This document shows, in pieces, positions 1,154-63,484 of a DNA stretch of 64,000 nt. Below the pieces are notes generated by a model, which made no database searches, was not told the DNA's origin, and saw nothing but the letters and a program-made list of their open reading frames with translations. This DNA comes from Eukaryota sp. TZLM1-RC. Its lineage: Eukaryota > Protista > Metamonada: BaSk clade. The DNA lies in contig JAUPSS010000007.1 of the NCBI GenBank assembly GCA_040285825.1, forward strand, positions 210,501 through 274,500. Reading direction: 5' to 3'. Position 1 is the stretch's first letter. Each line of letters opens with the position of its first letter. The position numbers and the translations under genes were made by a program.

Positions 1154-3190
1154 ATGGTTTCCCACACTCTTTGGGATGCTGTAAAGAGTGAGATCAGCCC
1201 ACTCACCTTTAATCTCAACCAGTACTTTCAATCGAAGAATCAGACAGCAATTGCTGTTGATGGACGATATTTCTGCAATATGTTCTTGCGCTCTTTCATC
1301 CCCAATCAAACCGTTGGCAAGGATCATGCAGAAATCAGATCCATCTTTTCAGAGTTCTTCATTGAACTAAAGCAACGCAACATCATCTTTGTCTTTTTTG
1401 ATGCTTCTCTCAATAGTGGCTACCCCATGCCACCTACTACCTCCTCCAGCCCACCACGAAAATTATCGTTCAAGCAATTATCATATGGACATTCCTTTCG
1501 TGGGGACTGCTCTTGCAATCAACTGATGTACTACTGTGCCCTCTCTCATGGACACAGGCTCCACGTTGTAGATGGAACTTATCATCTCGCCGTAGTCCAA
1601 GCCGTAACTTCTGGCGAGTGCATTTTCGCCATTGCCCCACCTTGCATTCACCCTGGTTTTGTGTTTGCCCACCTTCCTGGTCATGCGTGGGCCCTGGCCT
1701 TTAGCTGGCTATGGCTTGACAGACAGCAACCAATCCATCTATTATTATACACCGCCGATCTAATTGTATCTGTCGGGAGGAGAACCGTAGATGAAATTAT
1801 TGTAGTTGATGCTGTGATTAGGTATTCACAGTCATGTTTTGCTGAAATATTTGGTCTCAGTCGAACATCCGAGAACTTTTTGAAAGTTTTGAATTGGAAT
1901 TCTTTTCGTTTCAAGCAAGCCCTAAAAGCAGTATCAAACAGCCGTGAGTTGGTCAGATTCATTGAGTATATCAATGGCCGGTATCATCCACAAGCTCCAG
2001 TGGATTTGAGGAAGATTAAAGTTTTCAATTCATTAAGAAGAAGTAAAAGTGATTTTGACTCTGTAATCTTATCATTTATGGCTGTTTCCAACCAGTTTTC
2101 TCATTATGTCCCTAGATCATTAGTTGATGAAGCGCTTATTGAGGAAATTTCTTGTCAGGATTTGGGAATTTCTTTTGTTACATCTGCAGACGGTAATTAC
2201 TTTGGTTTTAAGTTGGGGTCTGTTTTTGAAGAATTCTTTACGAATTTTGATCTTAGTAAAATTCTGCACTTGTTTTCTTCATGGGGAGGTGATGATTCAG
2301 TTCCCCATAAGTCAAAATTTGAGAAGAAATTTGAATTATTTTGCCAAAATGAACCTATTGCGTGTGTCCTGGCTTTGGCCCTAAGTTTCATCAGAATTCG
2401 CCAGAAAATTTCAAATATTGAAATATTTGATGATTCTGATTTTCTTTTCATTATTGCTTCTTTTTTCTGTAAAGACGACAGCAATCAACACTTTACTTCA
2501 ACTGAAAGCATTTATCTAAAAACCTCAATCCTGTATTCATCTTTCCGCTGTTTTGTTCATTTATTTTCCATTTTTGGCGAAAAAACTGCTTGGGAAATTT
2601 ACAAAATTATTAATTTCAGACTCTTTTCTTTTTTATGTGTCAATTACAAGGATTCTTTTGATTTGGATCCATTAAATACATCCAATTTCTCTCAAAACAT
2701 TGAAAACTTTTTACTATTTTTAACAAACAATACAGATTTTCAAGTTTGCAAAAACAGTTTTAAACAATTTTTTAACATGTATGGTTTGATAATCTTTCCT
2801 GATCTCGATATTGATATGAAAGTCAACAAAATTTTTCATTCAGGTTCAAAAAATTCAATTTTCAGGACAAATTTTGCTCGAAGACCGAGGTTCTTTATCG
2901 GTAAATCCCGTCTCAAAAAGCTTAAACAACGTTATTCTAATGATCTGGACAGTCTTTGTGCCGTTTTCATTGACCAACAAATTGAGGAATTAAGTCGGGA
3001 GTTCAGTGAAGCCGACGAAGACTCTTTTGATGATTGCTATGATGATATTGTAGAAGAAGTGGTAGAAGAATTGGAGAAAAAGGAAAGAAAAAGGAATAAA
3101 AGTGCTTTTAAAGGCACTGAAGACTTTTTTGACGGTGGAGTTCACCATATTCATCGTAGGAAAAGGCCTTTTAAAAGGGGTAGATTTTAG
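1154..3190 (+). CDS. PIN-like (Asteroid/FAM120/XPG-N-like) domain protein, probably catalytically degenerate
   Basis: Long intact ORF, first ATG at 1154. N-terminal IAVDGRYF...FFIELKQRNIIFVFFDAS matches the XPG-N/Asteroid pattern. The later EAD and DSD acidic motifs are not recognisable. Acidic then basic C-terminal tail. Confidence 0.55.
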   Translation: MVSHTLWDAVKSEISPLTFNLNQYFQSKNQTAIAVDGRYFCNMFLRSFIPNQTVGKDHAEIRSIFSEFFIELKQRNIIFVFFDASLNSGYPMPPTTSSSPPRKLSFKQLSYGHSFRGDCSCNQLMYYCALSHGHRLHVVDGTYHLAVVQAVTSGECIFAIAPPCIHPGFVFAHLPGHAWALAFSWLWLDRQQPIHLLLYTADLIVSVGRRTVDEIIVVDAVIRYSQSCFAEIFGLSRTSENFLKVLNWNSFRFKQALKAVSNSRELVRFIEYINGRYHPQAPVDLRKIKVFNSLRRSKSDFDSVILSFMAVSNQFSHYVPRSLVDEALIEEISCQDLGISFVTSADGNYFGFKLGSVFEEFFTNFDLSKILHLFSSWGGDDSVPHKSKFEKKFELFCQNEPIACVLALALSFIRIRQKISNIEIFDDSDFLFIIASFFCKDDSNQHFTSTESIYLKTSILYSSFRCFVHLFSIFGEKTAWEIYKIINFRLFSFLCVNYKDSFDLDPLNTSNFSQNIENFLLFLTNNTDFQVCKNSFKQFFNMYGLIIFPDLDIDMKVNKIFHSGSKNSIFRTNFARRPRFFIGKSRLKKLKQRYSNDLDSLCAVFIDQQIEELSREFSEADEDSFDDCYDDIVEEVVEELEKKERKRNKSAFKGTEDFFDGGVHHIHRRKRPFKRGRF

Positions 3191-3346
3191 CTTTCGGCAG
3201 TTTCTCATTTAGCCACCGCTGGTAAAAAGCTTGTGATTTTGTTATAAAGTCAATTATTGTAAAATTTTGTTTAAAAAGTTCATTTACTGTGATTTATTCA
3301 CTTTTTCAATACATCTATACAAAATTACTGAAATTTATTTTAGGAT

Positions 3347-3555
3347 CAGACACATTTTAAAACATCAAACCTTAAGTAAAATTTTTACCTACTCAAACCC
3401 CATTAATTGAATGATCGGAGGTTTTCGCCATTTACTTGAAAAGCAACTCGCTTGTTGACAGCTCTGTTTTGTCATTCAAAATGAAGTTAATATAACGAGG
3501 AAGAGCTTTAAATAACGAAAATACAATTCTGTTTTTTCAAATCAAATAGTCGAAT
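3347..3555 (+). repeat. ~210-bp dispersed repeat, copy 1 (others at 4912-5127 minus and 33206-33421 plus)
   Basis: Shared core ...acctactcaaacccca...gaatga(t/c)(c/g)ggaggttttcgc...gcaactcgcttgtt...aatataacgaggaa...gaaaatac seen in all three places. Confidence 0.85.
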
Positions 3556-4048
3556 ATACAACCACTTTGCTTGAGAGGATTTCCTAAATCATCTACAAAA
3601 TTATAATCTTCAGTTCCAAGGGTACGAAAAACTGAAATAGCAATTGAGACAAGTTTGATATTTCTGCCTCTTGCCTTATAATTATAAAGCAGCCAGTAAT
3701 GATTTTATGATTGATTTTCCTAATATTGTGATCTAAACGGGTTATACAACTAAAGCGTACCGTAAATTCAATACCAAAAAACATCTCAGTTTTTGAAAAT
3801 AAGTTGCTGCAATGTCCAGATCAACGTCTGATCTCCAAAAAGCTCATTACAATCAATTGAAATTGTTTGCTTGTTTTTCATACAAGCATTTGTAAGTTGT
3901 GCATTGGAATACTGTTGTGTTTAATGAAATTTCCTCTTGAGTTTGCCCCACGAGAACCCATTTTGGCTCTTCTTCTATGTCGGAATTTTGAATTCTTGGA
4001 GCCAAGAGGGTAATTTTGATTTCTTAGCATGTAGTTTGCAGAAAATCA

Positions 4049-7000
4049 GGTTATTTTCAATTTTGATAAATGCAATGTTGTTGCACTGTAAATGTGATAC
4101 AGTGTTTTTCAAAATAACATTATTTCCCATGTTGTGTGAAACTTGTTCTATATGGTATCACAAATACAAAACATGTGCTTCACATGTGAATTAAAATGGC
4201 AACTCTTACAGCCAATAATAGGCTTACATCAATAGATATACAAACCTTCAAAATACTGTTACAACCCAAATGCAAGGTGGACCCACACACAATTCCTGAA
4301 ATTATGCAGAATGTAGTTGAACGAATTGTCGTCTAATAAAAAACAGCTAAGTTGATCATTAATTCGATAAAAACCCCATTTAGAACTCATATCAAATTCA
4401 GCACATCTGAACTCAAAGCTTAGATTAATACATCCTTCCCTGAATTTTGCCCACAATCAAGACTACATTGCCTCTTCCTTATTCTCAATGTCATTGTTTG
4501 CCTTTTTTTCGTGACGACCTCAAAGCTATCTCAAAAGGAATGAAGACATTCAAGTTCTCCAATTATACAGTGAATGAAAACAAATTTCAACTTATTTTAA
4601 GATTGTTTGATGCTTTTTTAGTGAAGGACATCTCTCAAATACAGACGCTGAAACAAAACGCAGAATGGTACATATAGCAACAACAAGAACAAATCAACAA
4701 AACCTAGTAAAAGCATAATCCACATTGAACATTTTTGTTTTAGTAATATATACAACAAGAATTTTGCCAATTATTTACTAACCAAAAACTATTATTTTTC
4801 ATTCGATTTTTCCATAATTGTGCTACACTATATCGTGTTGTAACATTTACACCGTTGAACTTTGATTCACCATTGAACAATGGATCAAGAAAATCTGGTA
4901 AACAAGTAATCATTCGATTGTTTTGATTTGGAAGTACAGAATGGTATTTTCGTTATTCAAAGCTGTTCCTCGTTATATTCATTCAATTTTGAATAACTTT
5001 ACGGAGATTTATAACAAGCGAGTTGCTATACAAGTGAATAGCGAAAACCTCCCGTCATTCAAATGATGGGGTTTGAGTAGGTAAAAGCATTAGTTAAGGT
5101 TTGTGGTTGAATTTTAAAAAATGTCTGTTTCGGGAATAAATGCAAACTTTATTATTTGGTTGTAACTCTACAATTACAAATTAAAATTATTTTTCTTTGT
5201 TGATCTTTTGTAATGAGGAAAAGTTATCAAATTGGTGAGATGAACAAAAGAGGAGAGAAGATGCATTAAAGATAATAAAGAATTAAAGGTAAGAAAGGAT
5301 AAAAGAATTGATGGTACAAGTGCAATGATTCTCAACATTAATCCAAATAAATTTATTTAAACCTAAACACAATTACCACACCAAGCAACAGCATTAGCTA
5401 TTAATAAATGACCATCAGTTGAGGAAGCCCATCTGTAACCAGCTGGATTACCGTCACTACTGAATGAAATCCACCCAAATTCAACTATTCTGCCATTACC
5501 AACATTTTTCTTGGCAATTAAAGGGGAACCATTATTAATAGTAGCAACCAAAGTTCCACTAGTGAGCTTGGTGTTGACTCTACCATAATTTGAGGAAAAA
5601 GAGCTTACATTTGTTAATAAAGGATCATTAGGTAGTGTTGGAGTCATGGTTGCGTAATTGCTTGATGATCCTTGATACCAACCCTTACTACCCCCCTCAA
5701 AACAAGAGTAATTAAAAACATTTGCTGCATCATAATGAAACAAAACCAAACCCTTTCCTGATTCAAGTGTTTCATTAAGAAAAGAAGCTGGCCAATTCAT
5801 TCTCCATGTATCCACAACAACAACATCAAAAGCACTTAATTCATTGAAATTGTTTACTTGTAGGCCTTGGTTAATTGAAATCTCAACGTGATTCCAATTT
5901 TGATTAAATCCTCTTCTTAGCTTGGAAACAAGATCATTTAATAAATCATCAAGATAACAATAAACCCCAACATTAAGCCTAAAACAAACTTCCCTTCCCA
6001 ATAACCGTTTAGAAACTTCCCTAATGTTACCTTGATTACAACTAACCTTTAATACCTTCTCCAACCAAACTTCCTTATTACCATTAACCACATTAGAAAG
6101 GGTCAGATTAGAAAGGAAATCGACAGGAATTTCAACGACTTCTGGTAATGATTGGAATTGGTAATTGTCAATAACTTTGGCTATCAAATCAGTTGATGAG
6201 TGCTTAGTTCCAAAATTTAAAATATTGGTAAATTCTTCTTGATTTAATTCACCAAAATCAATTTTGTTGGTAATAGATTTGAATTCGTTAGTGTTGACCA
6301 AATCAGAAAGTTGTAAAAGCCAAATAAAATCATTTGGTTTAATTACCCTAGATTGAGTAATAAATAAAGAAATGGTTTTTGATTTTAAATCAGCAGAAAT
6401 TTCACAAGAAAGAATTTCCTCAACTATTTGTCTATTGATGGTACAAGTTGCATCCATTTGAACTGCCATAAGGACATCCTGAGCTCTTTTCGAAATATTC
6501 AAGCTGCTGACATCCACCAGATCTTTGTTGAGCAATTTTTTCAATAAACTCATTTTGAAATTTTTGGTGAAATTTTCGACATTTTCAAAGGATTGTAACC
6601 AAATATTTTGGTATTCCTGCAAAATATTCATAGCATTTCCAACACATTCAATACCTTGGTCCTTTAAATTGCCATTAATTGAGAGATTTTCATCAAAAAC
6701 CTCCCCACAATCAATTTGATTGATTAAAGTTGCTGACTGTCTAATCAGATCAGCAATCAAATCATTCAAAATTGATTGCCCTGTAGAAAGTGTTTCCTTT
6801 ACAACTTGGTCTACTTTTTCAGTTGGTTCAGCCAAGCCCAGAGTACATGTACTCAACCCTTGTTGCAATGCCTTGACCTCATCATTCACTGATTCTTTGG
6901 CATCTGAGAGAGGGAGTAAACATTTGTTGTGGGCAGCGTGGCCTTCTAAGAGACCACAAGAATCGCAGATTGCTACCTTGCACTGGGAACAAAAGTATTC

Positions 7001-7408
7001 AAGGTTCTTTGACTTATGGCGAGGACACTTGACGGAGGTGAGGGAGGCTTTCTGTTCGAGAGGGACGATGTTGTGGTTCTTGAAAACTCTGTTCTGGTGT
7101 ATTTGGGCAGAGCACTGTTGGCAGTATGTGACTTCGCATTGTACGCAAAAGAGAGTGGCATCGGATTCGAGACAGTTGTTGCAAACAGGTGATTCCTTTG
7201 GTTTTTGGTTGAGAGCATCGATCGCCTCGAGAAGGGCTATGTTGATGCAAAGAGCACGTTGAGGTACGTCGTTGCGGCACGAGGGACATGTAGAGTTGGA
7301 TTTCAGCCATTTGGAGAGACATTTGGTTCGGCAAAAGCTATGTCCACAAAGAAGGGTTGTAGGTTCTTCCATTGTTTTAAGGCATATACCACACTCAAGG
7401 AGACTCAT
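4049..7408 (-). repeat. 3.4-kb segment duplicated in inverted orientation at 30919-34285
   Basis: The TRIM-like ORF and ~1.3 kb of its non-coding 3' flank align with 30919-34285, up to gcatttatcaaaattgaaaataacc. Confidence 0.93.
5363..7408 (-). CDS. TRIM-like E3 ligase: RING + two B-boxes + helical region + C-terminal ThuA/class I GATase-like domain
   Basis: C3HC4 RING (CGIC...CGHSFC...CPSC); B-box1 (CNNC...CVQC...CQQC...H...H); B-box2 (CPRH...CSQC...CDSC...H..H). The C-terminal motifs FDVVVV, LESGKGLVLFH, PLIAKKNVGNGRIVEFG and LLIANAVAW are typical of ThuA/GATase1-like folds. Confidence 0.88.
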   Translation of the reverse strand: MSLLECGICLKTMEEPTTLLCGHSFCRTKCLSKWLKSNSTCPSCRNDVPQRALCINIALLEAIDALNQKPKESPVCNNCLESDATLFCVQCEVTYCQQCSAQIHQNRVFKNHNIVPLEQKASLTSVKCPRHKSKNLEYFCSQCKVAICDSCGLLEGHAAHNKCLLPLSDAKESVNDEVKALQQGLSTCTLGLAEPTEKVDQVVKETLSTGQSILNDLIADLIRQSATLINQIDCGEVFDENLSINGNLKDQGIECVGNAMNILQEYQNIWLQSFENVENFTKNFKMSLLKKLLNKDLVDVSSLNISKRAQDVLMAVQMDATCTINRQIVEEILSCEISADLKSKTISLFITQSRVIKPNDFIWLLQLSDLVNTNEFKSITNKIDFGELNQEEFTNILNFGTKHSSTDLIAKVIDNYQFQSLPEVVEIPVDFLSNLTLSNVVNGNKEVWLEKVLKVSCNQGNIREVSKRLLGREVCFRLNVGVYCYLDDLLNDLVSKLRRGFNQNWNHVEISINQGLQVNNFNELSAFDVVVVDTWRMNWPASFLNETLESGKGLVLFHYDAANVFNYSCFEGGSKGWYQGSSSNYATMTPTLPNDPLLTNVSSFSSNYGRVNTKLTSGTLVATINNGSPLIAKKNVGNGRIVEFGWISFSSDGNPAGYRWASSTDGHLLIANAVAWCGNCV

Positions 7409-8237
7409 CGGTGGAATGGTAAAGAAGGAGAAAGAAATGGTGGTAATTCTGTATTACTGGATTCAATAACACATGAAATACCAACTGAATGTACAGCTCC
7501 CAGGCACAAGACGTCGATACGTAGAAATATGAGCAACATTTAATCACACTGTTGTTGTTCAGTAAATATCATTGAGTTATCTACACGTTGCTGTCAAAGG
7601 TACTATTTTCAATAAGTATGACTCAAATATCATGTGCTTTACGACATTTCTCAAAAAAATAGTGTTTTTGATTAAAAGCGAGGGATTAAATAAACAAAAA
7701 TGAATTAAGTCGAGCAGTTTCAATAATTTCTAAATGAAAAGATTAATCAAATGTCCGAAAAACAGTTTGTATGTTGATTAGAATTAGAAATGAACCCCAT
7801 TACTTTTTGCTTCTATAATCAAAATAAATAAAGATATAAACAAATAAATGGAGACATTTATCTGTATTTTCTTTGTGATTCTGAAACCGGTCATAATCAG
7901 GTGCTGATATAGAAGGTTTTAAGAATCAATTTTTCAGCATCAAACTCTTGTTATAACAAGAAGTTCATGAGCTCAATCCTTATAACATTCAATTCATCTG
8001 TGGGGTTTTCATAGACATAATCCAGCATCAAGTCAGAGTGGTTCTCATTATAGTGCTTTTGGAAAGTGAACTCAAGTTTAATTCGTGCCGCTTCTACCTG
8101 AAAAATTGTAGACATTAAAGTAAACCATCTTTTTACCTTAAGGTAACAAGATTGCATACATTGTGGTGAAATTGCTGTGATCATCCAAATTGATCTCCAA
8201 GGATTCAGCTACTCAACCTCTTACTATACACACAATA

Positions 8238-25804: not shown

Positions 25805-26907
25805 TGATGCCGATAGGCAGATGAACACACGAAGGAGAGAGAGAAATCTGTTGTTTATTAATAAAACTGATTCATAAATGAGTATCACGTCATCAGTCGA
25901 AATACAAAAAAACCTACTAATTCAATTTGAGTTCAACAACAACACTACTTTTTCCCACTTTTCTGAGGACAAATACAGTACTGGCTCAATAGAGGGAAGA
26001 TATGGGGTTTGTTAAACTCTTTGGTGCATCGTTTGTGTGACACAAATAATTTACCTCATGTTTGATTTTAGATGGACAATCGCGGGAGATGTGTCCAGGC
26101 TTGTGGCACTTGAAGCACGATTGATTTTTTAAATCCTGAGAGCGCCAAGAGGACCTCGTTTTAGTGCCAGCCGTACGTTCCACATCATTCACTGAGGTTT
26201 TGAAACCACGAGTCCATGAAGCAACCCTAGAGCAGTCCAACAGCTCATCAGTAGTGGTTTCGACAAGAGAGTGAAGATCTGGGAATACATCATCTCGAAT
26301 TCTCGCTAGTAGAGAACGTTGAAGCCCTACGGGAAGAATTCCTCTGGCAAATCGATTCAGAAAAGCTGTGTCTGGTAACTTCAGTCCGGAAGCCCTACTC
26401 TTTACCTGGAGGAAACGTCGCAGGTAACAGGACATACGTTCTCGGACGTCACCAATACGGACATCAAGCTTCAGTTCTGACATAGCCAGACTAAAATCTT
26501 CGTACGTGGCGAACGATACGACAGATTGAAGATGTCTAAGAAGAACATCGTCACTGGAAGAGACGTCGGATTTCTGGAGAGATAGGGACTCTAACAGAAA
26601 AGAATCGACCAAGAGTCTTGCTGGAACAAGCTCTTTCTTAGAAGTCACAGAAGAATAGATCTTCCACTCTTGTAGGAACAAGAGAACACTTTCAACTTTC
26701 ATGGAAGAAAGAGACGGGAGGTTGACAGAAGGAACAGTCATCTGAAATAAGAAGGGCCAATAATTATTGATGCCGTTAGGCAGATGAACACACGAAGGAG
26801 AGAGAGAAATCTGTTGTTTATTAATAAAACTGATTCATAAATGAGTATCACGTCATCAGTCGAAATACAAAGAAACCTACTAATTCAATTTGAGTTCAAC
26901 AACAACA
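25805..26907 (-). mobile_element. Gag-only LTR retroelement (1103 bp), non-autonomous
   Basis: 140-bp LTRs at 25805-25944 and 26768-26907 with TG...CA ends, differing at only ~2 positions. 4-bp TSD TTAG (25801-04 / 26908-11). Polypurine tract GTGGGAAAAAGTAG abuts the 3' LTR. Confidence 0.93.
25986..26741 (-). CDS. gag: Retrotransposon Gag with CCHC zinc knuckle
   Basis: CFKCHKPGHISRDC knuckle; capsid-like YLRRFLQV...LNRFARGIL; lies between the LTRs. Confidence 0.9.
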   Translation of the reverse strand: MTVPSVNLPSLSSMKVESVLLFLQEWKIYSSVTSKKELVPARLLVDSFLLESLSLQKSDVSSSDDVLLRHLQSVVSFATYEDFSLAMSELKLDVRIGDVRERMSCYLRRFLQVKSRASGLKLPDTAFLNRFARGILPVGLQRSLLARIRDDVFPDLHSLVETTTDELLDCSRVASWTRGFKTSVNDVERTAGTKTRSSWRSQDLKNQSCFKCHKPGHISRDCPSKIKHEVNYLCHTNDAPKSLTNPISSLY

Positions 26908-30355: not shown

Positions 30356-30918
30356 TGAGAAATGGATAAATCAATTATTAAAATTGATTGTAATATTGTA
30401 AATACTGTTTGCTCAAATCATTCATTCACCAAAGTCAGCGTTATTGTGTTGGAGCTGCGTATAATTATCGTAAAATAGATGAATGTGTGGGTTGAATCTA
30501 CAATGAGGACATTAATAAGGGCATTGCGATACTTTTTTAAGTGAAGCAACCTCGAAATTGAAGATGCATTAATGGTGTTCAGCAATCCGTTGAGTTAATC
30601 AAATGTTCTGAGCAATATTTTCGCTTACTAAACAAAAGCATACACAAAAGAATGAACGCAAATTTGACTATAACAAATTACCTAGCTTGTTCAAAGTTTT
30701 CTTCTCGCAATGTTGTTGATAATTTAGTCAATGCGTAAGTATTATTCTTATCAAAAAACATTATTTCTAACACACAGCCACTTGATGCAGCAATTATAGT
30801 TGTTTACAAAAGTTTCCATTCAAGTCAGTGTTTAAGAATGTTGACACCGATAATTGAAGAATATTTGTGGTGAATCAGATGGTTTGTTGAGTGAAAATAT
30901 CACCTTCACCAATCTCTG

Positions 30919-32968
30919 ATGAGTCTCTTTGAGTGTGGTATATGCCTCAAAACAATGGAAGAACCTACAACCCTTCCATGTGGACATAGCTTCTGTCGAA
31001 CCAAATGTCTCTCTAAATGGCTGAAATCCAACTCTACATGTCCCTCGTGCCGCAACGACGTACCCCAGCGGGCTCTCTGCATCAACATAGCCCTTTTCGA
31101 GGCGATCGATGCTCTCAACCAATAACCAAAGGAATCGCATGTTTGCAGTAACTGTCACGAATCCGATGCCACTCTCTTTTGCGCACATTGTGACGGTACC
31201 TTCTGTCAACATTGCTCTGCTCAAGTGCATCAGATGCCATTTTTCAAGAACCACAACATCGTCCCTCTCGAACAGAAAGCCTCCCTCACCACCGTCAAGT
31301 GTCCTCGCCATAAAACAAAGGTCCCTTGAATACTTTTGTTCCCAGTGCAAGGTTGCAATCTGCGATTCTTGTGGTCTCTTAGAAGGCCACGCTGCCCACA
31401 ACAAATGTTTGCTTCCTCTCCCAGATGCCAAAGAATCCGTGAATGATGAGGTCAAGGCATTGCAGCAAGGGTTGAGTACATGTACTCTAAGCTTGGCTGA
31501 ACCAACTGAAAAAGTAGACCAAGTTGTAAAGGAAACACTTTCTACAGGGCAATCAATTTTGAATGATTTGATTGCTGATCTGATTAGGCAGTCAGCAACT
31601 TTAATCAATCAAATTGATTGTGGAGAGGCTTTTGATGAAAATCTCTCAATTAATAGCAATTTAAAGGACCAAGGTATTGAATGTGTTGGAAATGCTATGA
31701 ATATTTTGCAGGAATACCAAAATATTTGGTTACAATCCTTTGAAAATGTCGAAAATTTCACCAAAAATTTCAAAATGAGCTTATTGAAAAAATTGCTCAA
31801 CAAAGATTTGGTAGATGTCTGCAGCTTGAATATTTCGAGAAGAGCTCAGGATGTCCTTATGGCAGTTCAAATGGATGCAACTTGTACCATCAATAGACAA
31901 ATAGTTGAGGAAATTCTTTCTTGTGAAATTTCTGCTGATTTAAAATCAAAAACCATTTCTTTATTTATAACTCAATCTAGGGTAATTAAATCAAATGATT
32001 TTATTTGGCTTCTACAACTTTCTGATTTGGTCAACATTGACGAATTCAAATCTATTTCCAACAAAATTGATTTTGGTGAATTAAATCAAGAAGCATTTAC
32101 CATTATTTTAAATTTTGGAATTAACCACTCATTTACTGAATTGATAGCCAACGTTATTGACAATTACCAATTCCAATCATTACCAGAAGTCGTTGAAATT
32201 CCTGTCGATTTCCTTTCTAATTTGACCCTTTCTAATGTTGTTAATGGTAACAAGGAAGTTTGGTTGGAGAAGGTATTAAAGGTTAGTTGTAATCAAGGTA
32301 ATATTAGGGAAGTTTCTAAAAGGTTATTGGGAAGAGAAGTTTGTTTTAGGCTTAATGTTGGGGTTTATTGTTTCCCCGATGATTTTTTAAATGATCTTGT
32401 TTCCAAGCTAAGAAGAGGATTTAATCAAAATTGGAATCACGTTGAGATTTCAATTAACCAAGGCCTACGAGTAAACAATTTCAATGAATTAAGTGCTTTT
32501 GATGTTGTTGTTGTGGAGACTTATGGAATGAAATGGCCAGCTTCTTTTCTTAATCAAATACTTGAATCAGGAAAGGGTTTGGTTTTGTTTCATTCTAATC
32601 CAGCAAATGGTTTTAATTACTCTTGTTTTGAGGGGGGTAGTCATAGTTGGTATCAATCACCATCAACAAAAGGTTACGCCACCATGACTCCAACACTCCC
32701 TAATGATCCTTTATTAACAAATGTAAGCTCTTTTTCCTCAAATTGGGGTAGAATCAACACCAAGCTCACTAGTGGAACTTTGGTTGCTACTATTCATAAT
32801 GGTACCCCTTTAATTGCCAAGAAAGTTGTTGGTAGTGGCAGATTAGTGGAATTTGGGTGCCTTTCATTTAGCAGTGGCAGTAATCCAGGCGGTCCAAATT
32901 GGAATTCCTCAACTGATGGTCATTTATTAATAGCTAATGTTGTTGCTTGGTGTGGTAATTGTGTTTAG
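30919..32968 (+). pseudogene. Paralogue of the TRIM-like gene at 5363-7408, disrupted
   Basis: AAA>TAA nonsense at 31123-31125 and a +1 frameshift at ~31320 (aag g tcc ctt gaa); otherwise colinear with copy 1. Confidence 0.88.
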
Positions 32969-34834
32969 GTTTAAATAAATTTATTTGGATTATTATTGAA
33001 AATTATTGCTCTTGTACCATAAATTCTTTTATCCCTTCTTACCTGTAATTCTTTATTATCTTTAATGCATTTTCTCTCCTCTTTTGTCCATCTCACCAAT
33101 TTGATAACTTTTCCTTATTACAAAAGATCAGCAAAACAATAAATAATTTTAATTAGTAATTGTAGTGTTACAACCAAAAAATAAAATTTGCATTTATTCC
33201 CAAAACAGACATTTTTTAAAATTCAACCACAAACCTTAACTAATGCTTTTACCTACTCAAACCCCATCAATTGAATGACGGGAGGTTTTCGCTATTCACT
33301 TGTATAGCAACTCGCTTGTTATAAATCTCCGTAAAGTTATTCAAAATTGATTGAATATAACGAGGAACAGCTTTGAATAACGAAAATACCATTCTGTTAT
33401 TCCAAATCAAAAAGATCGAATGATGACTTGTTTACCAGATTTTCTTTATCCATTGTTCAATGGTGAATCAAAGTTCAATGGTTTAAATGTTACAACACGA
33501 TATAAAGTAGCACAATTATGGAAAAATCGAATGAAAAATAATAATTTTTGGTTAGTAAATAATTGGCAAAATTCTTGTTGTATATATTACTAAAACAAAA
33601 TTGTTCAATGTGGATTATGATTTTACTAGGTTTTGTTGATTCTTTTCTTGTTGAGGCTATATGTACCATTCTGCGATTTGTTTCAGCGTCTGTATTTGAG
33701 AGATGCCCTTCACTAAAAAAGCATCAAACAATCTTAAAATAAGTTGAAATTAATTTTCACTCACTGTACAATTGGAGAACTCGAATGTATTCCTTCCTTT
33801 TGAGATATCTTTGAGGTCGTCACGAAAATTAGGCAAACAATGACATTGAGAATAAGGAAGAGGCAATGTTGTCTTGATTGTGGGCAAAATTCAGGAAAGG
33901 ATGTCTTAATCAAAGCTTTGAAATCAGATGTGGTGAATATGATATGATTTTTGATTAGGGCTTCTATCGAATTAATGATCAATTTAGCTGTGTTGTATTA
34001 GAAGACAATTCGTTCAATTACATTCTGCATAATTTCAGGAATTCTATGTGGGTCCAGCTTGCATTTGGGTTGTAACAGTATTTTGAAGGTTTGTATATCT
34101 ATTGATGTAAGCCTATTCTTGGTTTTAAGAGTTGCCATTTTAATTCACATGTGAAGCACATGTTTTGTATTTGTGATACCATATAGAACAAGTTTCACAC
34201 AACATGGGAAATACTGTTATTTTGAAAAACACTTTATCACATTAACAGTGCAACCACATTGCATTTATCAAAATTGAAAATAACCAAAATAAAAAAATAA
34301 CAAAAAATGAATGATCACTTGTTTTTGAGAGATTCTAATGCTGAATTGAATTTAAACAGTGTAAATGTTGCAACACCATAAGTAGCACATTGATGGAACA
34401 AACAAAATAATAAAAGCAAATAAATGGTCCATTTACCATTTGCAATGATTTATACCATTCTTGTTAATGTTTACATAAAATTATGCGCTGTGGAGAATCT
34501 ATTTTAATAGTTGAAACAAGTCCTTGATTACATTTTGGTTGAACTGTACCTTAAAAGTGATATTTTCATCATTCAGAAACTCGGCACAATTCCAATTTTC
34601 CACAAAATGTTTATTATCTATTTTTGAGAATTTCATGTATTTGTGCACTATTGAATTTATTATTTCTTATTATTACAAAACTATTTTAAAGTTTTTTTCT
34701 ATTTTCATATATTCATCCCATGAACAAAGGCATCAAAGCTTTCAAAACAGTCAGTAAACAATAAACATAAAAAAGAAATACAATTTATTTGTACATCAAC
34801 AATACAGTTAACAACCCCCTAACCAATCAATCAA

Positions 34835-36019: not shown

Positions 36020-36622
36020 CTACGAAGAAACAAAACAAAACAAAACAAAACAAACAAAAACACATAAGAAACAAAATTCTCCACGCCAACTCTTGATGAA
36101 TCCTGATACAGCTTGGACAGCATTAAATTTAAGTATTTGGGAACACTTCTGCACAAAGCAAAAATGATACGATTCTTCCATAAATTCCCTGCAAAATTCT
36201 TGCCACTCGAAGAACATTAATTATTTAAATCATTGAGAAAATTCAAGGCAACCTGTCCAATGTTGCCAAAAATCGAGAAGGCAAAAGGAAAAAACGAAAA
36301 CTTCGAGTAAAGGTTCTTATTTAAATCATTTAATATCTCAGTATATTTGTCTCTTTTACGATCCTCAGCCTTGTTTAAATGACCATAAGAACTGAGTAAA
36401 ACATCATCACGATAAATAAAAGCAAAGGGATCAACTGTAGTAAAATCAACAACTTGAGATGAATCCACAAAAGGAGCAATTAAATCACCTCAACGTGAAA
36501 TCAACAGATCATTATCGCTATAATGCTTCAACAACGGTTCTGCTTTGCAACTAAAATTGTAACACTTAAACATCTCATATGTCACATCAGGAACGGCATT
36601 ATGAAGAACTGACCGATATTGT
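36020..36622 (-). mobile_element. 5'-truncated non-LTR retrotransposon 3' end (RLE-type, CRE-like), degenerate
   Basis: Homologous to 51421-52091: YRSVLHNAV...EP...GDL...VVDFTTVDP...AEDRKRDKY. Has stops and frameshifts and a (TTTTG)n 3' UTR. Confidence 0.8.
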
Positions 36623-45422: not shown

Positions 45423-46124
45423 TGTTGTTGTTAAACTTAAATTGATTTAGTAGGTTTCTTTGTATTTCCACGGATGATGTGATATACACGTTTATGAATC
45501 AGGTTTCTTGATAAACTTTGATTTCTCTCTCTCCTACGTGTAATCATCTGCCTAGCGGCATCAATAATAATTGGCCCTTCTTATTTCAGATGACTGTTCC
45601 CTCTATCTATCAACCTCCCGTCGCTTTCTTCTATGTAAGTTGAAAATGTTCTCTGTTCCTACAAGAGTGGAAGATCTATTCTTCTGTGACTCCTAAGAAA
45701 GAATTTGTTCCAGCAAGGCTCTTGGTCGATTCTTTTCTGTTAGAGTCCCTATCTCTTTAGAAATCCGACGTCTCTTCCAGTTACGATGTTCTTCTTAGAC
45801 ATCTACAATCTGTCGTATCGTTCGCTACGTAGGAAAATTTTGATCTGGATATGTCAGAACTAAAGCTTAATGTCCGTATTGGTGACGTCCGAGAACGAAT
45901 GTCCAGTTACCTGTGACGTTTCCTCCAGGTAAAGAGTAGGGCTTCCGGACTGAAGTTACCAGATATAGCTTTTCTGAATCGATTTGCCAGAGGAATTCTT
46001 CCCGTAGGTCGTCAACGTTCTCTTCTAGGGACAATTTGAGATGATTGATTCCCTGATCTTCACCCAGATCAGAGCTTTTGGATTGTTCCAGGGTTGCTTA
46101 ATGGACTCGTGGTTTCAAAACCTC
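45423..46124 (+). mobile_element. Degenerate 5' LTR + gag fragment of the same family as 25805-26907
   Basis: LTR at 45423-45563 (TGTTGTTG...GGCATCA), near-identical leader ttggcccttcttatttcagATG, gag with stops and frameshifts, 3'-truncated. Confidence 0.9.
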
Positions 46125-49200: not shown

Positions 49201-50520
49201 AATACTTAACTATAATAGATAGTTTGGATGATTCTCTTGGTCTTCCTGATTGGTCTATTGAAATAATTTTTAATGTAGATAACAATTTTATATTCAAATG
49301 AGAGTGTGGTGCCACTCCGAAAGATGTGAAAGGGCTATTGAGCATACGAATGACCAACAAATGTCCTCCGATTTGTCTGATTTGTGTTGTAAACAAAACA
49401 ATATACTAAGACACCCTATTGAAGAATGTAACAAGTTGTGTTCAAAAAATGGTGGAAAAGATCATTTCGGCAAATCGCATATAGATATTGCACGTGATGG
49501 TGTTGATTATCTCAATATTGAGAATTCATCTTTTGATAATTCAAGTTTCACCAATCTCTATGCAATACCAGACTTCAATTGTTCAAAGCGTTTTCTGTTG
49601 TTAATATCTATTTAAAAATTAAAAATTCATCAAATATAAAAAAAACAGATTGACCAGAAAATTTCATAAAAACATTGAATTTAATTGACTTTTCGTAAAT
49701 ACGTATTCTCAGCACTTTTAATCACCGGTCATTGAGCTCGAAGAATATTTGTTTTGTACAGGACATTTTGCAGAACAAAAGCTGAATTAGCAACAAAAAA
49801 GCAGGTAACCAACCACGAATCAATTCATGATACCTTGCTATACAAAGAAAATTGTGCACTCAAAGTAACACTGGAGATGCTATGAACTGAATCTAATAAG
49901 AAATTCCGCTTAAGGAGAAATGTACATACCTCAACAAAATGATGATTAAAATTTCGGTTTATGGAAGAAAATAATTAAAAGCAGAAAAATGATGATAGCT
50001 GATGTACATAGATTCTCACATCAATGGCGAATAAAGTTGTTTAAATTAACGTGTACCTAGAAAATGTAGTGTATACATTTGCTACCTACAGAAAATGAAA
50101 ACTCAATGACCCATCGGTACCCTGGTGATGTTTTAAAGTCTGGGTACTGTAATTTATCAGAATTTTAAGGTTTCTTTAGTGGGGAATGTGTAGCTGTTAC
50201 AATCAAGGTCATCCCTATTGAGGTGGACAAGGAAACGTACAAAGCGTGGCAGCAAGAGCAAGTACAGCAAGAGGTTATCAAAATGCCAGTTGAAGATTTA
50301 AAAGAGCTCAGCACAGGTTTACTGGCTCCATTAACCATTTGGAAATACCTCTTCTAAGCAACTCTTGTGCTAAAGATACAGATGACCCTTATTTGGCGTG
50401 TACAAGTGTACTTACACGGTGTTTTTAAATGTTGAGGGTTTTCGTGTGTGGTAACAGTGCTTCTCATTCTTCATTGCAAATGAGGATTGAATTCTTAACC
50501 AAAGTTGTTGTAAGTATAAC

Positions 50521-50698
50521 ACCAACAAAGATCCAAAAACATGTAGACTATACAGACACATGTAATCAGATCTTTCTTGACTGTAATCAGCCTCAAACAG
50601 TTAAAAACTGAATGATTGATGATTAATCAGTCGTTTATGTATTTATGAATAGAGACTCTTAATAAAGAGAATTACTCTCAATATTTGGTAGAGACTCT
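50521..50698 (+). repeat. ~180-bp repeat family copy (also 54822-54999 plus, 61772-61945 minus)
   Basis: Shared aaaga.ccaaaaacatgta...tcagatctttct.gactgt.atca...tgtatttatgaata...attactctc.atatttggtagagactct. Confidence 0.85.
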
Positions 50699-51420: not shown

Positions 51421-52091
51421 AATTAGACAAAAAACCTACTGCCAATTTTCGTCATATTGTGAGCTGTAAGAAATTTCTCCAATATAGGTCAGTTCTTCAT
51501 AATGCCGTTCGTGATGTGACATATGAGATGTTCAAGTGTTACAATTTTAGTTGCAAAGTAGAACCTTTGTTGAAGCATTATAGTGATGATAATCTTTTTA
51601 ATTCACGTCGAGGTGATTTAATTGCTCCTTTTGTGGATTCCTCTCAAGTTGTTGTTGATTTCACTACAGTTGATCCCTTTGCTTTTGTTTATCGCGATGA
51701 TGTTTTACTTAGTACTAATGGTCATTTAAACAAGGCTGAAGATCGTAAGAGAGATAAATACACTGAGATATTAAATGATTTAAATAAGAACCTTTATTCG
51801 AAGTTTTCGTTTGTTCCTTTGCCTTTTCGATTTTTGGCAACATTGGACAATCCGCCTTGAATTTCATCAATGATTTTGGTAATTTATGTCGTTCAAGTGG
51901 TAAGAATTTTGCAGAGAATTTATGGAAAAATCGTATCATTTTCGCTTTGTACAGAAGTGTTCCCAAGTACTTGAGTTTAATGATGTCTAAACTTTATAAG
52001 GATTCATCAAGAGTTGGCGTGGAGAATTTAGTTTCTTATGTGTTTTAGTTTGTTCTATTTGATTCTTCGTAGAAAATAAATAAATAAATAA
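51421..52091 (+). mobile_element. 5'-truncated non-LTR retrotransposon (RLE-type, CRE-like)
   Basis: HIVSC...HNAVRD...EP...RRGDL...VVDFTTVDP...AEDRKRDKY...FVP (end of Zn knuckle + PD-(D/E)xK-type endonuclease). (AAAT)n tail; 14-bp TSD aataaattagatta (51407-20 / 52092-105). Confidence 0.85.
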
Positions 52092-54754: not shown

Positions 54755-54999
54755 AGAGTCTCTCCCCTTATTTCTTCTGAAAATAAACATGAAGTTCGTG
54801 ATTGTGCTATTCGTGAAATAGACCCACAAAGAACCAAAAACATGTAAACTGTAGAATCCCATGTAATCAGATCTTTCTGGACTGTGATCAACCTCACACA
54901 GTTTAAAACTAAGGGATTGATGATTCTTCAGTCGTTGATGTATTTATGAATACAAGCTCTAACTATAGAAAATTACTCTCTATATTTGGTAGAGACTCT
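54755..54999. mobile_element. Putative MITE (fullest copy of the 180-bp repeat family)
   Basis: Terminal inverted 9-mers AGAGTCTCT (54755) / AGAGACTCT (54991-99). No clean TSD. Confidence 0.5.
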
Positions 55000-60900: not shown

Positions 60901-63484
60901 CTGATATGGTTTCTTTTAATTTTTGTTTTAATGTGAAATTACTCGTTTTATAAGAAAAAAGTGTTGATTATTCACAAATTTCTATCATAAATTTGCAATT
61001 TACAGCAAAAAGATTTAAATTGATACTTTACCAGCCGAACTCTCCTCAATCTTGGTTTTAGTCTTGCGATGTATTCCCTTTCAAAACACCTTCTTCTCAA
61101 CTTTCCTATTTGACACTATTGTTGAGTGTAACACCAATGAGATTGGAAGTCCCCACATCCCAACAAATCCCCTTCTTTGTTTCCCACACGCCTGTCTTTG
61201 CAGAGAATGACCCTTGTTTGTATTGAAAAAAGATCTCACCTTTGAAACTCAATGTGATCTTCGTTGATTTCCTTTACGTTCTCTTTTTCCCTTTCAGTTG
61301 ATCATAAGGGTTTGATATCTTTTCCCTTTCGTTGACGCAGGTTTTATTGAGTATGACATTGGATTCATTGCTATAAATCATCATAATTATTTCTGTGCAT
61401 TCCAGATGATTTTCACTATCATGGGATACCATGCTTCAGAAGGATGAGTTTTTGGCTTTTGTGGGAATTGAACCCATGACCTTGGCTTTGGAAGCATATT
61501 AACTTTAATCATTAGAATCTATATTTGATAATTGTGGTGTTCGAGACAATCTGTTGAACATTTCATTATTATTTTTAGTTTTGTTTCCAAGAAGATTTAC
61601 CTGGTCAGGTTGCACTTTTTCTCAAAATTATTCAATTGTATTCATTCAATTTTTAAATTGGTTTATTGGAATATCTTCTTTGATGAGCAATAGTGGAATC
61701 TTTTATAAAGAATAAGGGTTTTGTAATACGTTCAAGTGCCTAGTTTTAGTTGTTTTTATCAATTCAAATACAGAGTCTCTACCAAATATTGAGAGTAATT
61801 CTGTATATCTTGAGTCTCTATTCATAAATACATAAACGACTGAGTAATCATCAATCATTCAGTTTTTAACTGTTTGAAGTTGATTACAGTCAAGAAAGAT
61901 CTGATCACGTGTGTCTGTGTAGTCTATATGTTTTTGGATCTTTATAGGTTTAATACTATTATTATCCACACTTTACAAAGAGTTTCATATTGATCTTGTA
62001 TAATTACTCTGCAGTTACTTCTGTATGCTGGAGCTAATTCGAAACATTTGTCAATTCTGATGACTTCAAGACATTCTACTGAACAGGTTTTCATACATAA
62101 TCGCCTGCTTGTTTAGACGCATGACTCATTCTCTTGGTATTTTTTAGGTGGATGCTGAAGAATTTCATACAGGAGGTCCAAAAAAAGTTGCACATCTTTG
62201 AAATTGTGTAGTTTTAAGCTGCGCTTGTAGTGGCCAAACTTTTTCAAAACGGAGACAAACAGCTTCAAGATTGTGTGAAGAATTAGTTAGTATTCTTTCA
62301 TCAGTTAATTATTTCGTAATAACGCAAGAAGATCACTTACATCTTTGGAACGGAGGAAACTTTTCTGATCAACCAGTACTGTCTCAATAGTATCATCGAA
62401 AAGGTCGATAAAAGTCAGCTTCAATATACCAAAAGTCTTATTACATTATTTTTCAAAGTATCTGTAACTATGAGCTCTGCAAGTTCAGAGTCTGTTATTC
62501 GTTCAACGACGGCTGATAGGCAATGATTATCCCATTGAAAGATATGACCTTTTCTTTTTTTTTGTTTTATTTTTTGTTTTTATTTTAATTTTTCTTGGGT
62601 TCGTTATTAGCACCCATACTAATCACTTTACCACCTGGATGAACATATGACTTGAAAAAATTACCACACACTACATGGTTAATAGCTTTACCTTCAAAAT
62701 CAACGGTAACTATAGTAGTCAGTTACATTTTCCCTAGCTAGAGAACTCGGTAAAATTAAATCTGATCTTTTAGTCTGTTGAAGGATTCAACGATCACTTT
62801 TTTGCCTTTGTAAACTTTTCAAAATAATTCAAAACAGGAAAATACAGTATTTTTAACTATTAAACCAACCGCCAAAAGCTTAATTGGTACAAACTAATTT
62901 AAATATCCAATGGCGATTAGGAATCGTTTCCACTTTGTTAAGACATTTTGATGGATTTAAAATGACTTAAAATTAGTGGAAACTGGTTCATTTTGAAAAG
63001 AATTTGTGAAAAAATGCAAAGGTCAGTGTGGGAAGCAAGAAAGTTATTATTCCAGCCATAGTCAGTAAACACGCTTAACACGTTTTAACATTGTTCAACG
63101 GTTGAACTTCAACCTCAATATGAAATTTTATAAATTAAAGTTTATTAATCAATTTTAACTACACTCAAAGCCATCCAGATCTTTTCATTGACCAAATCCT
63201 TCTTCACTACTAACATTATGCTATATCTTCTATTTCAATTTCACTATGGCAAACTATTTTGTATCAGTTTGTTGCTTTTCGTTCACTAAACATAAACAAA
63301 TAACAGAAGTTTATGAACGGAATGAAAGAAATCAAAGAAAATAAAAGCTGATACAATTTAAACTAACGATCACGTGATGTACTTTCCAGAATAGGAAGGT
63401 CACGTTTAGCTACTGCTGACACCGCCTTCTCTTTCTCTTTCTTCGGGTTTAGTGGAGAGTTTCTTGAATGTGATGTAGACAGTA

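Follow-up and report, generated by a model that had tools for sequence, protein, structure and literature searches.

A TRIM-like gene family of the metamonad Skoliomonas with a ThuA-like C-terminal domain varying in six loops: candidate recognition proteins of a protist

Introduction

To our knowledge, TRIM sensors with variable recognition loops are regarded as an animal, and largely a vertebrate, innovation, and hardly anything is known of cell-autonomous immunity in free-living protists. Here we describe two copies of a gene for a TRIM-like protein found in a stretch of genomic DNA of 64,000 nucleotides (the window, meaning this whole stretch), together with the multigene family to which they belong. 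Sequence searches match the encoded proteins to 'Eukaryota sp. TZLM1-RC', and the host of the window is Skoliomonas TZLM1-RC; Skoliomonas is an anaerobic, bacterivorous, free-living metamonad of soda lakes (PMC11603281).

The vertebrate TRIM5, TRIM22 and finTRIM genes form clustered young families in which loops of the C-terminal domain are under selection and pseudogenes lie beside intact genes (PMC2657112, PMC2151084, PMC3845644). RBCC/TRIM37-like proteins outside animals, as in Dictyostelium and Trichomonas, are single- or few-copy and carry a MATH domain or no C-terminal domain (PMC3503706). The Skoliomonas family bears the evolutionary hallmarks of TRIM5 and finTRIM on a different, enzyme-derived recognition fold. 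The reading that we hold to be rather probable is that of a TRIM-like E3 ligase family whose catalytically dead ThuA-like domain binds targets, six loops of this domain being under diversifying selection within a gene-converted scaffold.

Results

Copy 1 of the gene encodes, in this order, a RING finger, two B-boxes (B-box1 and B-box2), a presumed coiled coil, a helical domain and a C-terminal ThuA-like domain (table 1). The succession of RING, B-box, B-box and long helices is that of TRIM/RBCC proteins, so that Pfam searches and AlphaFold2 (AF2) models bear out the TRIM-like architecture proposed in a preliminary description of the window. The Cys/His columns that hold the zinc ligands of the RING are invariant in 16 family members, with ω (dN/dS) of the RING at 0.04-0.16, and the B-box profile PF00643 matches two stretches after the RING (E 3.7e-14), the Cys/His ligands of which are likewise invariant. 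Sequence similarity to animal TRIM proteins is limited to the N-terminal 22-31%. The full-length AF2 model of copy 1 has a predicted local distance difference test score (pLDDT) of 69; helices at residues 167-189, 197-230 and 246-293, modelled as a monomer with pLDDT 28-49, are to be read as secondary structure only, and the helical domain at 300-470 is confidently modelled. The latter is strongly conserved across paralogues (ω 0.2-0.26; proportion of synonymous differences, pS, <0.1).

For the C-terminal domain, an AF2 model based on a 38-sequence alignment reached pLDDT 91.7 and a predicted template-modelling (TM) score of 0.87. It displays the three-layer alpha/beta arrangement of the class I glutamine amidotransferase-like (GATase1)/ThuA-like fold. 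Such a fold had been proposed in the preliminary description, with Foldseek suggested as a means of confirmation, and Foldseek indeed retrieves 2gk3, 4e5v, 1t0b and 3rht (probability 1.0, E 3e-8 to 1e-6, TM 0.5-0.55), the neighbours including ThuA-like proteins, STM3548/STM1381, a planctomycete GATase1-like protein, the middle domain of GH42 and true amidotransferases. Further matches come from the ESM Atlas (TM 0.67-0.75 to ThuA, BatA-DUF7408 and BTB-BACK clusters) and from a profile of the domain alignment searched against the PDB, which finds 3soz, 2gk3 and 4jqs at E 1e-3 to 7e-3 (3soz at E 1e-3). In Pfam, copy 1 itself scores 24.1 bits with DUF7408 (E 4e-5), under the cutoff of 27, and has no ThuA match; the link to ThuA is transitive, through the relatives P0026 and P0030, which score 50 bits with ThuA against a cutoff of 33.4. 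An exhaustive HMMER search collected 158 representative relatives, several of which pass the ThuA cutoff or match DUF7408. As to the Cys-His-Glu triad, no Cys, His or Glu is conserved at the positions of the 38-sequence alignment that are invariant or nearly so. The domain is accordingly of the GATase1/ThuA-like fold and is no amidotransferase enzyme. Elsewhere in this genome, on other contigs, it is also found standalone and fused to a BTB domain (P0032), to a protein kinase (P0034) and in shorter RING/B-box proteins (P0039, P0043, P0171), further carriers being P0022, P0027 and P0029. The sampled relatives from outside skoliomonads are bacterial-type secreted multidomain proteins, the nearest of them 31-39% identical.

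The differences between the two copies concentrate in six short patches of this domain. The six pairs of variable peptides listed in the preliminary description, among them CYLDDLL/CFPDDFL, DTWRMN/ETYGMK, HYDAANV/HSNPANG, KGWYQGSSSN/HSWYQSPSTKG and NYGRV/NWGRI, were recovered verbatim, and the indel noted in the fourth measures 3 nt. Between copies 1 and 2, the proportion of nonsynonymous differences (pN) reaches 0.275 in the patches, against 0.032 elsewhere in the domain and 0.023 for the middle region, while the adjacent non-coding flank differs by 0.060; patch pN is thus 4.6 times the divergence of that flank, and the clustering of differences in the patches is non-random (Fisher p 3e-12). 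In sliding windows, patch 4 combines pN of 0.16-0.23 with pS of 0-0.09. As had been claimed, the patches follow or cap beta-strands in the AF2 model (in the region of patch 6, residues 648-662 have low pLDDT in the full-length model), and four of the six loops stand at the C-terminal ends of strands. The oxyanion hole, the nucleophile and His/Glu of GATase1 folds are borne by the loops that succeed beta3, beta4 and the last strand. Taken together with the positions of the patches, this would place the variable loops around the edge of the ancestral active site, and patch 3 would, by topology, occupy the place of the nucleophile elbow.

The variation recurs beyond this pair. The same six stretches vary in group (clade) A, which comprises copies 1 and 2, L001 and L002, in group (clade) B, which comprises L003-L010, and among the paralogues of strain GEM-RC1, that is, in three clades and two strains, and they do so in the intact paralogues L001, L002 and L003-L010. 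The overlap of variable columns between clades is weakly significant (odds ratio 1.8, p 0.045), and for columns predicted across clades the cross-validated ω amounts to 1.44 (group B) and 1.15 (group A).

To assess selection, 12 genes were aligned by codon, the stop and the frameshift of copy 2 being masked with N, and analysed under GY94-F3x4 site models. Regional ω is 0.2-0.33 in the middle region and, for the whole C-terminal domain, 0.8-1.2 among copy 1, copy 2 and L001 and 0.9 in clade B. In the C-terminal domain of clade B (eight genes, omitting three further group B paralogues, P0174-P0176, as well as P0014-P0016, the latter with differing C-termini), model M2a (log-likelihood, lnL, -2058.4) is strongly preferred over M1a (-2108.7; 2ΔlnL 100.6), with 14.5% of sites at ω 7.5. 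The M7/M8 comparison, which the preliminary description had put forward as a check, agrees with this result, as does M8a/M8, and the sites with ω > 1 fall mostly in the patches: 19 have a posterior probability (pp) above 0.95, and 14 of these lie inside patches. The signal persists on the topology of the middle region and on a star tree (2ΔlnL 126 and 132, respectively). Clade A gives 2ΔlnL 21 (p 3e-5) for the same domain. As controls, the middle and the N-terminal region of these genes show no significant ω > 1 (p 0.45, 1.0, 0.08 and 0.65). The hypervariability described for the original pair is focused in the same loops of independent clades, and site models give ω > 1 only in the C-terminal domain. 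Confinement of ω > 1 to the recognition domain is a feature of conflict-driven receptor families, with the caveat here of a raised synonymous rate and recombination. When the patches are analysed as a partition with their own branch lengths, M2a is again better than M1a (2ΔlnL 23, p 1e-5, 42% of sites at ω 4.5). The selected sites are rich in Trp, Tyr and Phe: in either clade these make up 26-29% of their residues, versus 9% elsewhere in the domain. They are not enriched in loops as delimited by DSSP (10/19 vs 93/210, p 0.3), several of them being the final residues of strands. From these codon patterns, diversifying selection on the loops is well supported.

B-box1, likewise singled out in the preliminary description, is indeed diverged, but its synonymous sites are near saturation: codons 91-110 have pS 0.62-0.68 and pN 0.16-0.23 in both clades. 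We tried it as a second positively selected module and rejected it, since M2a did not improve significantly on M1a (p 0.08 for group B, 0.65 for group A). In sliding windows along the gene, pS is 0.2-0.5 in codons 1-240, peaking at 0.62-0.68 in B-box1, and from codon 240 on it is below 0.1 except near the patches. G+C content at third codon positions also shows a strong step inside copy 1 and the L001-L010 genes, from 0.44-0.49 in codons 1-240 to 0.15-0.29 in codons 241-470, and this step lies where synonymous divergence falls from 0.2-0.5 to <0.1.

The preliminary description knew two copies, and its supposition of a larger family is borne out by at least 14 paralogues in TZLM1-RC and at least five in strain GEM-RC1. 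A third close copy, P0001, is 91% identical and lies on the same 3.2-Mb contig as the window; the fourth, P0002, is 78% identical. A second clade of 11 members (P0004-P0011 and P0174-P0176) has ~45% identity, and nine of these are found within ~190 kb of contig JAUPSS010000010.1. Lineage-specific, clustered expansion accompanied by one or more pseudogenised members is what conflict-driven receptor families show. All genes fetched consist of a single exon, and all encode a complete RING once an upstream ATG is taken as the start; the database models of five members (L007-L010 and L001) begin at an internal Met and miss the first 12 RING residues, and in L007-L010 (genes at 2001-4007) yet another upstream ATG would add 20 residues. 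In L001 the stop codon has changed from TAG to TCG, with a gain of two codons. Homology of copy 1 to L001 and L002 covers only the open reading frame (ORF), ~19 nt upstream and ~29 nt downstream (window 5334-7427 vs L001:2948-5039 and L002:1998-4076), and stops just past an AATAAA-like motif, with no trace of poly(A). As these bounds fall near the ends of the ORF, the duplicated or converted unit looks transcript-sized. An ORF with a reverse-transcriptase domain (RVT_1) at L006:5158-6030, 1.1 kb downstream of the family member P0007, shows that retroelements sit within the gene cluster.

The two copies in the window belong to an inverted segmental duplication of ~3.4 kb, with arms at 4049-7409 and 30918-34285 and 90-96% identity. 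Both were found where the preliminary description had placed them, and so was the near-identity across ~1.3 kb of non-coding 3' flank, amounting to 6.0% mismatches over 1,314 aligned bases; a search of the flank of copy 1 for ORFs longer than 85 aa found none. On the other side, homology of the two copies begins ~10-20 nt 5' of the ATG. Copy 2 aligns with copy 1 along its whole length, and its treatment as an intact counterpart did not hold, given a nonsense codon and a frameshift (table 1). Its residual ORF has 619 aa from position 31109, the first 72 residues being out of frame, so RING and B-box1 cannot be made together with the rest. A non-standard genetic code as the cause of the TAA was considered and rejected, the paralogues ending at TAA or TAG. 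Private changes are about twice as numerous in copy 2 as in copy 1 or L001. Its N-terminal part, which is the disabled one, shows an excess of replacements, with 11 nonsynonymous (N) and 9 synonymous (S) private changes vs 4N/7S in copy 1 and 2N/8S in L001. Its middle region still appears constrained (raw N/S ~1.1; ω between the copies 0.26). In the C-terminal domain, private changes number 14N/2S in copy 1, 16N/6S in L001 and 11N/3S in copy 2, the bias toward replacement being as strong in the two intact genes as in copy 2.

Table 1. Features of the two gene copies and their flanks, with positions in the window and residues of the copy 1 protein. Site numbers of the patches are positions in the AF2 model, and their pp values come from the group B analysis.
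Feature	Position	Strand	Remarks
Copy 1	5363..7408	-	intact single-exon gene, 681 aa; uninterrupted ORF; exists as NCBI protein
RING finger, residues 5-45	7274..7396	-	Pfam zf-RING_2 E 1.2e-10, zf-C3HC4 E 1e-8
B-box1, residues 72-117	7058..7195	-	Pfam zf-B_box; high synonymous and nonsynonymous divergence
B-box2, residues 128-170	6899..7027	-	second Pfam B-box stretch; Cys/His invariant
Long helices, presumed coiled coil, residues 167-293	6530..6910	-	AF2 full-length model
Helical domain, family unassigned, residues 300-470	5999..6511	-	AF2 pLDDT 81-90
C-terminal domain, residues 471-681	5366..5998	-	GATase1/ThuA-like, without catalytic triad
Patch 1, residues 484-490	5939..5959	-	loop after beta1 and start of helix 1; sites 47, 50, 51 pp>0.95
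Patch 2, residues 533-538	5795..5812	-	loop after beta3; sites 95, 97, 98, 100 pp>0.95
Patch 3, residues 558-564	5717..5737	-	loop after beta4; sites 121, 122, 124 pp>0.95
Patch 4, residues 575-584	5657..5686	-	beta-hairpin tip with indel; sites 136-139 pp>0.95
Patch 5, residues 607-611	5576..5590	-	start of a strand; site 170 pp 0.999
Patch 6, residues 646-661	5426..5473	-	long loop, last strand to C-terminal helix; sites 210, 220 pp>0.95
Copy 1 3' flank, non-coding	4049..5362		duplicated with the gene; inverted repeats
Copy 2	30919..32968	+	disrupted paralogue; RING and B-box1 severed from remainder
Copy 2 in-frame TAA, codon 69	31123..31125	+	Lys in all paralogues
Copy 2 +1 frameshift	~31321..31326	+	one extra base vs copy 1, L001 and L002; after codon 135
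Copy 2 ThuA-like domain	32330..32965	+	frame open; interval flagged in the preliminary description
Copy 2 3' flank, non-coding	32969..34285		within the other arm of the duplication

A part of the copy 1 flank of approximately 226 bp (~4916-5141) recurs with 80% identity at L005:1679-1898, on a different contig and upstream of an unrelated member of the family, and is a dispersed short repeat. Other repeats in the window, inverted or direct, 170-410 nt long and 81-93% identical, pair 26271-26680 with 45654-46063 and 36043-36621 with 51480-52060; the same class is represented at 50513-50698, 54822-54999 and 61772-61957.

Discussion

In the reading that we favour, the family would consist of lineage-specific cytosolic RBCC (TRIM-like) E3 ubiquitin ligases of Skoliomonas. 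Ligase activity and self-assembly would fall to the RING, the two B-boxes and the coiled coil, and the catalytically dead GATase1/ThuA-like domain would be the putative target-binding module. Diversifying selection would keep the six loops diverse among paralogues, four of them near the ancestral active site, with the surrounding scaffold homogenised by gene conversion. The loops might bind fast-evolving non-self targets, such as viruses, intracellular bacteria or the Gag protein of retroelements. Copy 1 would represent a functional member and copy 2 a recently disabled one, that is, either a RING-less product or remnant, or a pseudogene.

Several observations weigh against this interpretation. 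The site models were run with purpose-written code, the M0 estimate of which (ω 0.85) agrees with the Nei-Gojobori (NG86) value of 0.90, and the comparisons are between paralogues, not orthologues or alleles. Codons for identical amino acids differ synonymously 2.5-4.6 times more often inside the patches, where the mean site synonymous rate (alpha) is raised as well (3.4 vs 1.6). M0 fitted to the patches alone, on a tree six-fold longer, yields ω 1.42 for group B and 0.70 for the intact genes of group A, neither significantly above 1, and a grid test resembling fixed effects likelihood (FEL), which allows for site-specific synonymous rates, finds three sites at p<0.1 and is underpowered with eight genes. 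The C-terminal data reject the tree of the middle region by 48 lnL units. The question of gene conversion, brought up in the preliminary description, is in this respect answered, recombination being evident from the conflicting topologies; recombination inflates site-model tests and so tempers the signal of selection. Finally, in a related pair of smaller RING-B-box-ThuA proteins, P0039 and P0171, which are 95% identical, no loop-focused variation is seen. Gene conversion or old divergence evidently contributes to the raised synonymous divergence of the patches, as far as the codon data tell, and since patch divergence is also synonymous and conversion takes place, simple models overstate the strength of selection. 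The ω of 7.5 is inflated, with ω > 1 for a subset of the loop sites being supported by the alignments. The simplest reading of the pattern along the gene is concerted evolution, the 3' two thirds of the genes being subject to gene conversion, with diversity retained in, or re-imported into, the loops.

Much of the same evidence would suit loops that are merely unconstrained (ω ~1), conversion homogenising the remainder of the 3' two thirds: besides the patch-wide ω, the raised synonymous divergence, the conflicting regional trees and the few significant sites in the FEL-like test, pS is below 0.1 over codons 240-470 and 0.2-0.5 in the 5' third. We nevertheless regard such a neutral origin as unlikely. 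It does not account for the superiority of M2a within the patch partition itself, nor for a patch pN so far above the non-coding divergence, nor for the enrichment of Tyr and Trp at selected sites in both clades, nor for the variability of the same loops in three clades and two strains, and conversion alone gives no reason for its tracts to avoid precisely these loops. The differences between the two copies might alternatively reflect neutral decay of the disabled copy 2, as the preliminary description had already considered. The nonsense codon, the frameshift and the surplus of N-terminal private changes in copy 2 fit such decay, and the pair alone would be ambiguous, copy 2 being disrupted. 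However, intact paralogues largely refute this explanation, which we find extremely improbable: copy 1 and L001 hold at least as many private C-terminal replacements as copy 2, so that the patch differences are not a product of pseudogene decay; the middle region of copy 2 still looks constrained by its N/S and ω; and L001, L002 and L003-L010, all intact, vary at the same patches.

Substrate adaptors with housekeeping functions are usually conserved, as P0039 and P0171 are here, and this speaks against an endogenous or ecological role of the variable family, be it recognition of paralogue-specific substrates, mating or kin recognition, or sensing of prey glycans by a sugar-binding ThuA-like domain. 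In favour of such a role one may cite the ties of the domain family to carbohydrate-related proteins (ThuA, the GH42 middle domain, bacterial secreted multidomain proteins) and the free-living, bacterivorous habit of the host (PMC11603281). Yet fast diversification of loops rich in Tyr and Trp, when combined with the birth and death of clustered genes, is a pattern familiar from genes in host-parasite conflict (PMC2657112, PMC3845644), and we consider roles of this kind distinctly unlikely.

Going beyond the family itself, one may tentatively, and with more doubt than conviction, envisage an intracellular immune repertoire of skoliomonads that arose independently of animals. A ThuA-like domain, possibly of bacterial origin, would have lost catalysis, and the loops of its former active site would have turned into hypervariable, Tyr/Trp-rich binding loops reminiscent of complementarity-determining regions. 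The domain would then serve as a module in scaffolds of the TRIM-like, BTB (cullin-3 adaptor), RING-only and kinase types, with diversification by selection and by gene conversion among clustered paralogues. If the favoured interpretation in terms of TRIM-like ligases is true, it would mean convergent evolution of ubiquitin-based sensing and a new protein scaffold with natural hypervariable loops. It might also open a way to the viruses, bacteria or retroelements exerting pressure on a deep-branching anaerobic eukaryote. Loop-swap and pull-down experiments are practical in a family that is small, free of introns and rich in intact paralogues.

In a limited literature search, we found no published description of a TRIM-ThuA combination and no mention of this TRIM-like family in the literature on Skoliomonas. 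The described proteins to which it can be compared each share only part of its features. Similar to TRIM5alpha, TRIM22 and finTRIM with their variable PRY-SPRY domains, the Skoliomonas family is clustered and lineage-specific, its selection is confined to loops, and pseudogenised members stand beside intact ones. In contrast to the beta-sandwich SPRY of these antiviral TRIM proteins, its C-terminal domain is an alpha/beta GATase1/ThuA-like one; the proteins further differ in having two B-boxes and an extra helical domain (300-470) between coiled coil and recognition domain, and the host is a metamonad protist. With ThuA-like and GATase1-like proteins (PF06283, DUF7408; 1t0b, 4e5v, 2gk3, 3soz, 3rht) it shares the fold and weak profile similarity, whereas its domain lacks the conserved Cys-His-Glu, stays below the Pfam cutoffs, is fused to ubiquitin-ligase modules and is hypervariable in loops at the former active-site edge. 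Like the non-animal RBCC/TRIM37-like proteins, it combines RING and B-box outside animals; unlike them, it is expanded and carries a hypervariable recognition domain, neither of which has been reported for TRIM37-like proteins.

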